A stretch of 64,000 nt of DNA from Hormiphora californensis (taxonomy: Eukaryota > Animalia > Ctenophora). Shown piece by piece: positions 6,487 through 12,400 of this stretch (positions are counted from its first letter, which is position 1; the number at the start of each line of letters is the position of its first letter). The notes beneath the pieces were generated by a model, which worked only from the letters and a program-made list of their open reading frames with translations, did no database searches and was not told the origin of the DNA. Position numbers and translations under genes: made by a program. The DNA lies in assembly GCA_020137815.1 (NCBI GenBank), contig CM035357.1, positions 6,820,001 through 6,884,000 of the forward strand, given 5' to 3'.

Positions 6487-9400
6487 CTAGTTAGTAACCC
6501 CTCCTGCCCCAGGGCTCATTAAGTTCTGCTCCCCAGCACCACGCTGAGTGGGGGCATATTGGGAGACCACCATCTCACCTCTCAACTCCCCACAAATCCC
6601 ATCCGGGGAGGTCAGGAGAAGTCCGAACGTGTAAAGGACATCTGGTGTTGTTCTCCCCTTCATTGAGAGTATGCCTTGTCCATAACAGTCCACTGAGTTA
6701 TGGGATACAACTTGAATCAGAATGTTCTCATTAGCAATAAATTCTCTGTTGGAGAGGATGGGTACCAGTTCAGGAACATCGTTCTGCTCCCAACATGACA
6801 CATCCACCCGGTCCATGGACTGCTGAACCTCAAAACCCTCCAGCTCCGGGGCGTAGTCAAACCTAATCCGAGGATTGGGACGACTGGAAACCGTTTCCTG
6901 CGAAGATAGCCGAGTAAAACTTGATACAAAACCGTTCTGGAGATTTGCACTGAATCTTGGCTTGTAGCAGGGGGAAGTGAATCTTTAGCAAGGAATCTTG
7001 GTCGTCATGGTTACCACGGAGACACTGCACTTTAGTGTCGACTGTGTAGGTAGCAATAACAGGGGCATGGTCACTTGCTTTATAGTAGGTGTTAGCAAAG
7101 TAACCGGTCTGGGTGGAATCGAGTTGTGGCATGGAGTGAATTAGGATTCGATCACAGTAGCTGGGGACGTTGTACACGTTCCCACTTGCCTTTACTTTCT
7201 CATACACGTACTCAGTTCTGCCACCTCGCTTGTACCTGGGATAGAGTTGCTGTGTGAGTGGATCAGAGACAAGGGAATTTTTTGGGAGAGTTGACTCAAC
7301 TCATAGGACACACCCCCGTCCTCAACTCAACTGTTGTGTCCTATGTCCAATGTCCATACACAGAAGATTATACCCCCTCCCCAATACAATAGTTACCTGT
7401 AGCTAGGTGGGAATTGAATGGGGGCCTCCTTATACTCATACAACACACTCCTCTGTCTCATTTCAGAGTGTAACTGGTCATCCTTTAGTAACGCATCATA
7501 GTTCTGTAGTTTAATGTTTTGTAGTACCTTCTCGTACTCACAATCCAACCTGTTATTAGGTAGTAGTTAGGAGTTGTTATGTTCTAACCCTCCCTACACA
7601 TTTGTGTTTCGGGGGCGGGGCGCACGAAGCACAGTCTAGCTTGGCAAATTAGGAGTTGAAAACAGTGGTTATTGGTCGGTTAAGGGTACGCTAACCAAAA
7701 ATTTTTTTCGAGTGCAGGGAAATCTCTCACCGTAGGGTTGTAGGCCATACCAAGGAGACCTCAAATATGCAATTTTAGCCCTTAAGTCGAATTCATATTT
7801 TTGCTACAGCTGTTTAAAAAATGTACTGTAAATACGTTTTTGGCACCTCAAAAATTTTTTTTAAAGATAAGAGCATGAAAATTTGGGGATTTGAAGAGGA
7901 CATGAAGGTGAATAACCACAAAAAATTTTTTTGCAATCCGAGCTGATTTCCGGTCCTGAGATGGATTTCTTTTTTTCCACTTTAACGCCCTATTTGGCAA
8001 AGTTCCGAAAACATGTGAAAGCTGTAAATTGGTGAAAAGTTGCGTCTAACGATGGATTTTGCATGGTTGGTGCCGATATGTGGAACACCATGACACAAAT
8101 CAGAGACTTCATCACAATGTGCACCTACGAATATGACGATTGTCACGTGGTAAGTAAAACACACAGCAAACTTCATTACCTCAGTATATACATTAGAATG
8201 GATGAAGCACACGTAAAAGACGCCTTCCACCGAGAGCGCTCAACTGGTTACTCAAGATCGAATAACAAACGGGAAACGATTCAATGGCGTAACCATTTGA
8301 ATCGTTTCCCTAATTTGTGAATGGATGAAGCAGATGACTCTTAGCATGCGTACTAATTACTCTAGTGCGAGTAATCATGTACCGAGTATTCCGATGTTCT
8401 CCAGTTCCCCCAATCTTCACCCTAAACCAATCTTCACCCTAAACCAATCAGTGAGAGTTGAGATTCCCTTCTTTATATACTTATTCCAATTTTGGTTACG
8501 AAACCACCCCTTCTTCTTCATTCTCTTCGAGCTAGCTGTTTAAGTTTTTAGTGTTTTAGTGTTTACCATAACAACTTCCTCAAGTTTACAGATTTGCCAC
8601 CGCTGGGGGTTTTAGTCGCTCGTTAGTTGATTTTATGGTTGTTTTTTGGTAAACAAGAGAGAGAGAGAGAGAGAGAGAGAGAGAGAGAGAGAGAGAGAGA
8701 GAGAGAGAGAGAGAGAGAGAGAGAGAGAGAGAGAGAGAGAGAGAGAGAGAGAGAGAGTCCTATTATAGTCCTTGGCAGTATTTCTAAAAATTTAAATTAG
8801 CATCTAAAAATCTAAATTAGCATCATCTTTCAAAGAAATGTTTCCCACTCAATGTGGTATACCTAGAATGAAATCTTTGTTACAAAATTCTGAGAAACAA
8901 TTCACGTGAATTTCTTAAACTCTTTGTCTTGATTCGTTGATCACAAGTTATCGAATCGTTGCAATGCTGTCAAAGTGTTTAACGTCTTCAAAGATATTAA
9001 TGCGTTTTGATATCTTCCCACTCACTTAGTTCGATGACTTATAAATAGGCGAGGTATCGATCCATTATAAAACTTATTTCTCGTTGCAGAACACTCTTAT
9101 CCGTATGATCACTCTTGAGTGGTGGTAGTCTTTGATCATGATCACCAACCTGCCAATATCAAATGCGAGTATGTTTGGTGCACAGACGGACGCGGAACGG
9201 TATGGTTTGGTAACCTACAGTGCCCTCGCACTGCTAATCAACGTCCTCGGAAACATCTTCATCTTGGTCTCATCTGCCAAGTACAATTCTATAAAGTTGG
9301 ATGACGTCTCTGTGGTTCTGATCCAGAATATCGCTATATCCGATATGGCCGTGGCCCTCAACACCATTAACTCGACCCTGGCATCCCTCCTTGCAAATGG

Positions 9401-12400
9401 GTGGATATTCGGCCGGTAAGATTATAGGGTTATTGTTCTCAAATCTCAATCCATATAAAAGTAGCTCGAAGCTAAGAATGTCACCCTAATATCTCCCAGG
9501 TTTGTCTGTTAGTGTTACGCAACCCACTACATCAAGGTACCAGCATTCATCACCAGCATCCTACTGATATGCGCCCTGAACATCAGCAAACTCTCCTGTC
9601 TCGTCTTCCCGCTGAGTGCCCGGACCCGAACCAGGAAAACCGGCATCATCATCTCCGGTGTGGTGTGGTTCGCTGCTTTCATCTTTCCAATTGCCCAGCT
9701 GTTGGTCGATAGTGGAGCGGTTGCGTTTGACTATCGGAATTACCGATGCCAGTATGTCTTTCGGGCAGAAATCTGGATTTGGTTGCGACCTCTTATGATC
9801 GGTGTTCTCATGGTCTTCCCCAACGTCCTTGTCTTGTTGACCACTTTTGCGTTGGTCTACTTTGTTGTTCGATCGGGTAAAAATGTCAAGAAACAAGGCT
9901 TGCTAACAGTGTTTGTAGTGGCCATGGTTTACATTGGGTCTTGTGCACCTGTCGGTATAATGCAAGGTGTTATCAAGAACATAATGCATCTCCTCTCACC
10001 CACTACCCAGAAGTTCTTCAAAACTAAGTTTTACAGATTCGCATTCTTTGTCAGCTTTATCAACGGTGCATCCAACTTCTTTGTATACCTTTTTACCTGT
10101 AGGAGCTTCAGTAGGTTTGTTTTGAAGGCGGCAGGCGGTAGGCTGAGTGTTCTAAGGAAGTATACCGTGTGCGGCAAAAAAAATCCCCCCCTAGACCACC
10201 ATAGTTGCCGATGTGGTGGAGAGCTGTAACTTGGCAGGGTTGCTCCACTATGTCTATCTTGATCCTGACAGAAAAATCAGAGCTCTAGCTCAAAATTCAT
10301 TTTCATGAACGGAATGAACATTGTCATTCATTCCAGGAAAAAATATTTTCCGGTCCAAAATTTAACTAATTATGTTTGGCTATCGATTAGCTTTCCAATG
10401 TGACCAAGATCAGCTAAATTGGACAACCACAAGAGACACAGTGTCATGTTTCTTAAAGTTAGTCAGGTCATGTGATCTTCACTGAATCGTTGATCGTGTT
10501 CAGTATTACGAATTGGTCTAAGTGGTACCTCCCGACCTAGGATGAACAGCGGGCAATCAGGGGAGAAAAAGAGTGGAGGGAGCCAAGAAGCACTGTGACT
10601 CTATATCGGGGAAGAAAAAGAGTGGAGTGAGCCAAGAAGCACTGTGATTCTATATCGGGGGAGAAAAAGAGTGGAGGGAGCCAAGAAGCACTGTGACTCT
10701 ATAGTCTATATTCCTAGACCGGAGTTTAGGACTAGAGACACTATAAATCGTAGTATTATTATTTGTGAAGCGTTTAGAAATGACTGAAACGAGTTGTCGA
10801 GAATGGCCATGGCTAACCATGGATTTGTGTATTATAATGTTTGCTAAGCTGTGGTTGACCAAATCTGTAGAGATATGTATTCTCTCTTTTTTTCCTTCTC
10901 TTTCTCGTCTGAATATAAACACAAAGGGTTTTCAATATATTTTGTTCAGTTCTATGTTTGCTGTTTCAACCATGTCTTTATTATGTCTCAAGGGTCAAAC
11001 TAACTTGTGCAAAGGTTTTGTAAAACGTAAAGGGTTTTATAACGGCCAACCCCATAAGATACATATTATTCACTGATGAGGACACGTTGTGTCGAAACGT
11101 TTGTTTTATTAGCATTTGATTTGAACACCTGAATCAACGTCGTTTTCCTGAATGCCTGAACCCACCCTAACACACGCGAGACCAGTCTGGAGGTCACCCA
11201 GTGGCCCAATGTTGTGTTAGACGCAACTTTTCACCAATTTACAGCTTTCACATGTTTTCGGAACTTTGCCAAATAGGGCGTTAAAGTGGAAAAAAAGAAA
11301 TCCATCTCAGGACCGGAAATCAGCTCGGATTGCAAAAAAAATTTTTGTGGTTATTCACCTTCATGTCCTCTTCAAATCCCCAAATTTTCATGCTCTTATC
11401 TTTAAAAAATTTTTTTTGAGGTGCCAAAAACGTATTTACAGTACATTTTTTAAACAGCTGTAGCAAAAATATGAATTCGACTTAAAATTGCATATTTGAG
11501 GTCTCCTTGGTATGGCCTACAACCCTACGGTGAGAGATTTCCCTGCACTCGAAAAAAATTTTTGGTTAGCGTACCATTAAGTGAGTAATGAACGGTTACA
11601 TCAACTACCTGTAGTTTAGGTCACCCATCCAGAAGACATGATCAAATCTATAACTGAGATGAAATGGGGCAAACTTGCTCTTCTTTCCGATACTCAGATG
11701 TTGGCATATATCCCGATACATCTCCGTTCTCTTGAGTTTCCTTTCAGCCCGGGCTGCTAGATGGCAGCCTATGAAGGCTAGTTTAGTCGTTCCGAAGGTG
11801 AATGATACTGCCGTGGCTCCCTTAGTGCCCACCATACCACCAACACCTGAAATAAAGGGGGGGGGGGGTGGAGTTGAGATCAGACAAGGAGAGGGGAGTT
11901 GAGACAGGAATTAGTAGTTAGTTTCAGTCAGTTATTATTCTAGGAATATACCACCATCAGAGAGTGATAATTTAGTATGTAGTAAAATAATCGAGTAAAT
12001 TAGTAAATTAGTAAATTAGTAAATTAGTGGGTACCTGTTTTAACAGTATCACACTCGGTACACGATATCTTTCCCTTGTGTATACTTTGTACTAACACCA
12101 TCACCCTGATCCCCATTAGTGACTGAATTCCCACACACATGTATTGGGTACCTGGAGAAGGGGGAATGATAACTTGTTGTCACAACTTGAATTTAACCGG
12201 GTTTGTATGTGGGGAGGCACGTCCGGGGCGTGGGAAGTCATAGTACAAGGTCAAAACACGGTTTGTTTGGGTCGAACGTTTCGGGGTTTTGCGGGGCAAA
12301 TAACGTATTAAGGTGATCTCCAATGAGAGATCGAGGGATTTACTCCCCCAAATATATCCCAACAACACCGTCCAGACGAGTTGTAGCTAGAGGTTACCAA

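Follow-up and report, generated by a model that had tools for sequence, protein, structure and literature searches.

How does a gene for a seven-transmembrane (7TM) receptor come to lie between the inverted arms of a transposon, within an intron of another gene? The question is raised by a stretch of 64,000 nucleotides from the ctenophore Hormiphora californensis (contig CM035357.1, positions 6,820,001 to 6,884,000; here C8:6820001-6884000), which is termed the window in the following. At 7680-11580 (positions without a contig name are those of the window) it contains a TTAA-flanked element whose arms are shared with an abundant foldback family and whose interior holds a two-exon receptor gene. 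We consider it likely that this locus is a single-copy Pack-TIR, i.e. an element with terminal inverted repeats (TIRs) around captured DNA: a young, TTAA-inserting foldback miniature inverted-repeat transposable element (MITE), the interior of which was replaced via other templates and the gene of which is now a pseudogene that has not spread. Genome-wide searches covered 110.7 Mb in 45 contigs; the published assembly comprises 110 Mb in 44 scaffolds, with 13 chromosomes (PMC8527503).

The loaded element, its family and its intronic site

The outer parts of the loaded element, and the complete family member that is located in the same window, are composed as follows.

7680..7683, no strand: left TTAA (target-site duplication); TTAA is likewise found beside about 300 family copies
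7684..8056, plus strand: left arm, which keeps the outer ~373 of the 609 nt in a family arm and stops at family position ~373
11214..11576, minus strand: right arm, outer ~363 nt, with a 7-nt deletion
11577..11580, no strand: right TTAA
1094..2491, no strand: complete family member including both TTAA, 1,398 bp, with 609-nt arms and a 180-nt loop

The two arms of the loaded element are inverted with respect to each other, with sub-blocks that are 95-99% complementary, and its left end is TTAA/GGGTACGCTAACC, its right end GGTTAGCGTACCA/TTAA. In the complete copy at 1094-2491, the arms are 97% complementary. A first, sequence-only reading had described a TIR family that is present in the window both empty and loaded, the loaded copy having TTAA on both sides and inverted arms, and this description was confirmed at 7680-11580. 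Genome-wide, a 22-nt terminus pattern including TTAA gave 298 forward and 299 reverse matches (none for a reversed control), which corresponds to a family of ~300 elements with a standard length of 1,398 bp. Identity among the copies is 97-98%, and the family is young; one older copy with 86% identity exists. A marker for the loop occurs 267 times, hence at most ~30 copies are without the normal centre.

The arms of the loaded copy are 97-99% identical to this family, and its interior bears no relation to the usual interior of the family. Each arm has retained its outer ~370 nt, and the inner 240 nt of each arm together with the loop, amounting to the inner 660 nt of the family unit, have been exchanged for 3.16 kb of other DNA. 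The exchange is symmetric: the left arm runs up to ..CTAACGAT and the right arm starts at GTTAGACG.., so that, in family coordinates, the two breaks are at most 3 nt apart. When the genome was searched for the break pattern (arm sequence followed by an abnormal next base), only the loaded copy and C9:4677596, probably a single-base variant, were found. Two variants are common to both arms; among 56 other arms, one of them is absent and the other occurs once. Since the arms share these private variants, they derive from one source element rather than from two insertions. The left terminus of the loaded element is intact. On the right, the arm strand has T as its terminal base (..ACCA/TTAA), where 56/56 other arms have G.

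The element lies between two exons of a gene on the minus strand, for which the following exons are relevant.

11609..11835, minus strand: host exon, 5-phosphatase, ending ..GDLNYR; its GT donor is 28 nt from the element
7396..7549, minus strand: next host exon, 5-phosphatase (LDCEYEK..PPSYR); acceptor AG at 7550-7551
17259..17615, minus strand: host exon with SH2 domain

Matches to PF22669 (inositol 5-phosphatase) cover 11608-11835, 7396-7548 and 6866-7207 on the minus strand, and PF00017 (SH2) matches at 17259-17615(-), upstream of the phosphatase exons. Because of this combination of an SH2 exon with 5-phosphatase exons, the host is predicted to be a SHIP-like gene encoding an SH2 domain and an inositol polyphosphate 5-phosphatase, for which we infer a single transcript. 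The intron in question, on the minus strand, has a length of 4,059 nt (7550-11608; donor CAG/GTAGTT, acceptor ..AACAG/G). The element fills 3.9 kb of it, and without the element and one TTAA only 162 nt would be left, so that the earlier figures (about 3.9 kb of a 4.06-kb SHIP intron following the GDLNYR motif) were accurate. As had also been proposed, the locus forms a nested intronic unit, the receptor gene being oriented antisense to the host gene.

Origin and decay of the captured gene

A genome search with the cargo yielded one near-identical locus, C4:6637313-6639943(-), with blocks of 90-100% identity, and as second match a more distant paralogue at C10:96485-97544 (81%). The copied receptor-locus DNA amounts to ~2.6 kb and differs from the C4 locus by ~47 substitutions in 2,378 aligned positions (2%, counting substitutions only). 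No trace of arms or family copies was present in the 16 kb of C4:6630000-6645999, so that the parental copy is free of the element. The unflanked parental locus for which the sequence-only reading had suggested a search thus exists, on another chromosome. Besides the intron, the cargo has kept ~1.07 kb upstream of the ATG and ~0.55 kb downstream. Since introns and upstream sequence are retained, the cargo is a DNA-level copy and the C8 locus the derived one, which bears out the earlier proposal of DNA-level capture as opposed to retroposition. RNA-mediated capture was considered and rejected, since both introns and the upstream DNA are kept and the ends carry no poly(A) or spliced-leader sequence. 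With ~2% heterozygosity for single-nucleotide polymorphisms in H. californensis (PMC8527503), the divergence between cargo and parent is about that found within the species, and the capture is therefore very recent.

Two further observations concern the 5' part of the cargo. Its first ~220 nt (8058-8280) are 99-100% identical to C4, the rest being ~2% different, and the chance of zero differences is ~0.01. In the parent this stretch is exon-like, as it follows TTTCAG/G and ends with CACGTG/GTAAGT at 8149; the captured segment would therefore begin only a few bases from a splice or trans-splice acceptor, and the cargo may lack the real promoter. The adjoining 117 nt (8281-8397) are unique in the genome and missing from the reference allele of C4, from which it follows that the assembled C4 allele is probably not the exact donor, or has since lost these 117 nt.

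The captured gene comprises two coding exons specifying a 7TM protein, a GT..AG intron and a TATAAATAGG box, which are arranged as follows.

From 8067, plus strand: upstream region of ~1.07 kb with a GA microsatellite; TATA-like box at 9041
9138-9415, plus strand: coding exon 1
9416-9499, plus strand: intron, 84 nt; GT at 9416, AG at 9498-9499
9500-10165, plus strand: coding exon 2
9507..9512, plus strand: 6-nt insertion TGTTAG just after the intron acceptor, found neither in the C4 parent nor in the C10 paralogue

Both the C4 parent gene (335 amino acids, 95-nt GT..AG intron) and the C10 paralogue (326 amino acids, 113-nt intron in the same place) are intact. Exons were searched separately, and a joined reading was used only for the count of codon changes and the position of the stop. 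Exon 1 matches PF00001 (7tm_1) with 17.4 bits for the cargo and 16.2 bits for the parent, which is weak against the cut-off of 30.5; exon 2 gave no match, and a protein search with exon 2 of the parent returned one uninformative match. Single-exon paralogues in the same genome show 37% identity (E 5e-37) and themselves reach 7tm_1 scores of 51.9 and 49.6 bits, and by this transitive homology the captured gene is accepted as a putative member of a divergent family of rhodopsin-like receptors.

The coding capacity of the copy is disrupted at two places. With the canonical GT (9416) and AG (9498-9499), the TGTTAG insertion creates an in-frame TAG (9510-9512) after codon 96, and splicing at the new AG instead shifts the frame. 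At 10166, the arm of a second repeat family, designated TE2, replaces the last 22 receptor codons by 20 repeat-derived codons. An uninterrupted reading frame for seven helices is thus lacking in the cargo copy and present in the parent and the C10 copy. When changes over 312 shared codons were polarised by the C10 paralogue, 3 nonsynonymous and 2 synonymous changes were assigned to the cargo, against 0 nonsynonymous and 6 synonymous changes in the C4 parent lineage (Fisher's exact ~0.06, by hand calculation). The captured copy in the reference assembly is therefore a pseudogene. The insertion form was also present in an independent short-read run (X1), with 23.9 of 59.1 depth. Of the earlier description as a whole, intron-containing gene for a G-protein-coupled receptor, the two-exon 7TM gene with its intron stands; the wholeness does not, in view of the in-frame TAG and the TE2 fragment in the 3' coding region.

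Interior patchwork and route of capture

Between the arms, the following segments were distinguished, ~500 nt of the 3.16-kb cargo being other repeat DNA.

8057..8066, no strand: left-joint filler, about 10-11 nt; GATGGATTT, which spans the joint, is a repeat of arm positions 7960-7968
8067..10165, plus strand: copy of C4:6637840-6639943(-) with upstream sequence, exon 1, intron and exon 2
10166..10527, plus strand: TE2 arm, ~362 nt; starts at a TE2 terminus, has an internal break and rejoins C4-derived sequence at TA
10528..11074, plus strand: copy of C4:6637313-6637842(-), the parental 3' region with 49-nt tandem repeats
11071..11207, plus strand: 137 nt from the inside of a third palindromic repeat (TE3), beginning at the TE3 centre
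11208..11213, no strand: right-joint filler, 6-9 nt

The C4 segment passes into the TE3 fragment via CACT microhomology. This fragment stops inside a larger palindromic element and has no repeat terminus at its bounds; since it starts at the palindrome centre and stops internally, it is copied filler and not a transposon insertion. TE3 arms in the genome reach beyond the matched 137 nt, and TE3 copies are 84-100% identical. TE2 is a second abundant foldback family (complete at 879 bp, arms of ~350 nt, ends CGTGTGCGG../CGTGTGCGGCAAAAAAAATCCCC..) with GTAC/TAC-like flanking sites and dozens of copies at 98-100% identity. The half-element in the cargo looks as if TE2 had inserted and, after excision, the gap had been repaired abortively; it could also belong to the same patchwork event as the other segments.

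The anatomy of these joints suggests how the interior may have been exchanged. A stall or break at the base of the hairpin that the inner arms can form is the likely trigger. The base of such a hairpin would bring both breakpoints together, and this would account for cuts that differ by no more than 3 nt between the arms. Repair by template switching, in the manner of gap filling or of fork stalling with template switching (FoSTeS), would then have synthesised a new interior, at first from 2.6 kb of the C4 receptor locus and subsequently from the centre piece of another palindromic repeat, and the joints would have been closed by filler bases, partly templated, or by 2-4 nt of microhomology. 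Breakpoints at the hairpin base, at least two unrelated templates, and joints with microhomology or filler are together the signature expected of template-switching repair, which argues for this type of process. Similar features, namely patchworks of several templates, 2-4 nt of microhomology, short stretches of templated filler and breaks that fall on the hairpin base, characterise templated insertions at palindrome or hairpin breaks, which are attributed to FoSTeS, microhomology-mediated break-induced replication (MMBIR) or polymerase-theta end joining; in the present case such a process is suggested by the junction anatomy alone.

For the place of capture, we give a slightly better than even chance to an event in place, within the SHIP-like intron, and a somewhat smaller one to capture elsewhere followed by a single transposition. 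The single copy, the mutated right terminus and the published prior for single-copy Pack-TIRs speak for the former; the location of the parent on another chromosome and the recent activity of the family speak for capture near the C4 locus and one transposition. Published single-copy, gap-filled Pack-TIRs favour nearby templates (PMC8277862), and the distance of the parent, taken together with this bias, leans towards capture elsewhere with subsequent transposition.

The strongest rival of a single-copy Pack-TIR without spread is a mobile Pack element: the gene would have been captured at or near its C4 home, the loaded unit would have transposed into a TTAA of the SHIP-like intron, and the family would in general spread receptor genes and create nested genes. 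It is favoured by the chromosomal separation of parent and copy, by a young and abundant family that points to a recently active transposase, by the intact left terminus with TTAA on both sides, and by the 176 nested intronic genes of Hormiphora that are flanked by transposons on both sides (PMC8527503). However, cargo beside arms occurs only once in the 110.7 Mb, and not in several copies at different sites as would be found after mobilisation. Nor was a gene-bearing copy found among ~65 other elements (about one fifth of the family), comprising overlapping sets of 31 normal-length terminus pairs, 12 termini with the loop marker at normal distance and 29 fetched loci (27 complete, 2 truncated). 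In addition, the 16 kb around the parental locus are devoid of family copies, the right terminal base of the loaded copy is mutated, and its gene is dead, so that no receptor was added by this instance. We regard this alternative as possible, but rather doubtful.

There is no sign of further spread of the captured gene. The sequence-only reading had seen in the element a vehicle that duplicates and disperses receptor genes, and had suggested a count of arm-cargo-arm loci throughout the genome; for this cargo the count came to a single locus, and the notion of a vehicle is not supported, in view of this number, the absence of genes from the ~65 inspected copies and the mutated terminal base. 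Several longer terminus pairs were considered as further loaded copies and rejected: a 6.2-kb pair contains a nested long interspersed nuclear element, and pairs of 2.6, 1.8 and 1.55 kb are nested or tandem family copies. A family copy at C4:2917585-2923827 is split by a 4.8-kb retrotransposon without long terminal repeats, which has apparently open reading frames of 429, 236 and 763 amino acids and a region for endonuclease and reverse transcriptase.

Two other explanations are far less probable. That two independent family insertions flank a resident receptor gene, the arms being remnants and no capture having occurred, would agree with the abundance of the family and the existence of tandem or nested copies, but is hardly tenable in view of the common and genomically unique break position of both arms, their two private variants, the mere 162 nt of intron outside the element, the intact arm-free homologue on C4 with only synonymous lineage-specific changes, and the filler and piece of another repeat in which the interior ends. 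An assembly artefact, in which reads of the C4 locus and of a repeat copy were joined into a chimera, might be suspected in a region rich in high-copy repeats where no listed contig spans an arm, but is equally improbable, as the cargo-specific insertion recurs in the independent run X1, two samples (X1 and X5) contain the junction between the right element end and the intron flank, and symmetric arms, TTAA flanks and a clean position within the intron are unlike a misjoin.

Some points nevertheless weigh against a single-copy Pack-TIR assembled from other templates in its present form. The parent lies on a different chromosome, which is at variance with the preference for nearby templates mentioned above. 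TTAA around the whole unit is uninformative, since TTAA is the target of every family insertion. A later independent insertion and deletion could account for the TE2 half-element, and individual inspection covered only about one fifth of the family copies. The reads were available as Logan contigs, which are too short to span the arms and in which no empty-site or unloaded allele was readable; they are also uninformative on the presence of the cargo in a second sample. One run labelled as RNA gave no match to the locus.

Affinity to known systems and biological meaning

With respect to the superfamily of the foldback elements, TTAA duplication in combination with 5'-RR..YY-3' termini is the hallmark of Kolobok elements as opposed to piggyBac (PMC9587614). 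Both features are present here, as 597 termini are preceded by TTAA and the family ends are GGGTACGC..GCGTACCC, the right end of the loaded copy being ..ACCA. A genome-wide search for an autonomous partner with the 17-nt terminus showed that this terminus is shared only by MITE variants. Further differences from Kolobok/T2-type MITEs are the foldback architecture with very long arms (609 of the 1,398 nt) and the host, ctenophores being outside the host list of PMC9587614. The family is therefore designated Kolobok-like by structure, a membership that is given by TTAA and the GG..CC ends only; the earlier name Kolobok stands as far as TTAA and the RR..YY ends are concerned, and finds no autonomous partner among the elements that share the 17-nt terminus.

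A piggyBac element, defined by TTAA duplication, CCC..GGG termini and a transposase (PF13843) from a partner that shares these ends, was considered as the partner of the MITE family and rejected, since the MITE ends are GGG..CCC, the canonical piggyBac ends are CCC..GGG, and the sequences are unrelated. The sole intact piggyBac in the genome (C4:6128789-6132793) has the ends TTAACCCTTTGG..CCAAAGGGTTAA without similarity to the MITE; it looks intact, with subterminal inverted repeats of ~400 nt and a transposase reading frame of 513 amino acids, and ~20 degraded copies are present elsewhere in the genome.

Repeats of the locus were also encountered in material with other labels. In run X13, which is labelled as organism B, the MITE arm (11216-11580) and TE2 (10176-10334) were detected at ~98% identity with a depth of 4-12, and neither cargo nor host exons were found at an identity of at least 88%. 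The simplest reading is that of trace DNA from the species or a close relative (prey or contamination), of which only high-copy repeats would assemble; horizontal transfer is conceivable. The MITE arm and TE2 repeats likewise occur in several marine metagenomes. Elsewhere in the window, a region with ~55% GC is located at 39800-50300.

The closest known counterparts of the loaded element are the animal Pack-TIRs, of which 370 were described in 100 animal genomes; the single-copy ones are mostly transposition-independent and arose at internal fragile sites, and gap-filling and FoSTeS(T) models were proposed for them (Tan et al. 2021, Nat Commun 12:4280, PMC8277862). Among them, the foldback element FB4 of Drosophila melanogaster captured nearly the whole Ssk gene together with its upstream region (PMC8277862). 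In common with these, the ctenophore locus has a non-autonomous TIR or foldback element, a DNA-level gene copy with upstream sequence and introns, an identifiable parent elsewhere, and internal breakpoints with microhomology or short insertions. It also belongs to the published majority class with respect to its single copy, which is there attributed to transposition-independent gap filling (PMC8277862); a parent on another chromosome is unusual for this class. In contrast to Ssk-FB4, which is multicopy, translated and under positive selection and has flanking duplications of 9-10 bp, the loaded element of the ctenophore host is single-copy with a disabled gene, TTAA flanks and GG..CC ends. 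Plant Pack-MULEs and other Pack-TYPE elements likewise have paired TIRs around captured host DNA; template switching during repair or replication is regarded as their route of capture. These members of Mutator or CACTA have as a rule gene fragments as cargo and frequently exist in several copies, whereas here a near-complete gene unit is present in a foldback MITE of the TTAA type. The locus is thus a genuine, well-preserved Pack-TIR in a ctenophore. Its kind is already known in animals, as gene capture by animal TIR elements, including a foldback with a near-complete gene, has been published (PMC8277862).

The genome of Hormiphora contains 2,357 nested intronic genes, of which 176 are flanked by transposons on both sides (PMC8527503). 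It is improbable, in our estimate, that recurrent gene capture in foldback or long-TIR elements with subsequent transposition into introns is a substantial source of these genes, of which the present locus would be one decayed example. Likewise, an expansion of receptor families by transposons is not demonstrated by this locus, as the copy is dead and has not spread. What it does provide is a clean and very young ctenophore case of transposon-linked gene duplication at the DNA level, in which all junctions are still readable. The symmetric breakpoints together with the multi-template interior lend unusually direct support to template switching at a hairpin base as the origin of such elements, and thereby offer a concrete mechanism to be tested against the unexplained excess of transposon-flanked nested genes in Hormiphora.

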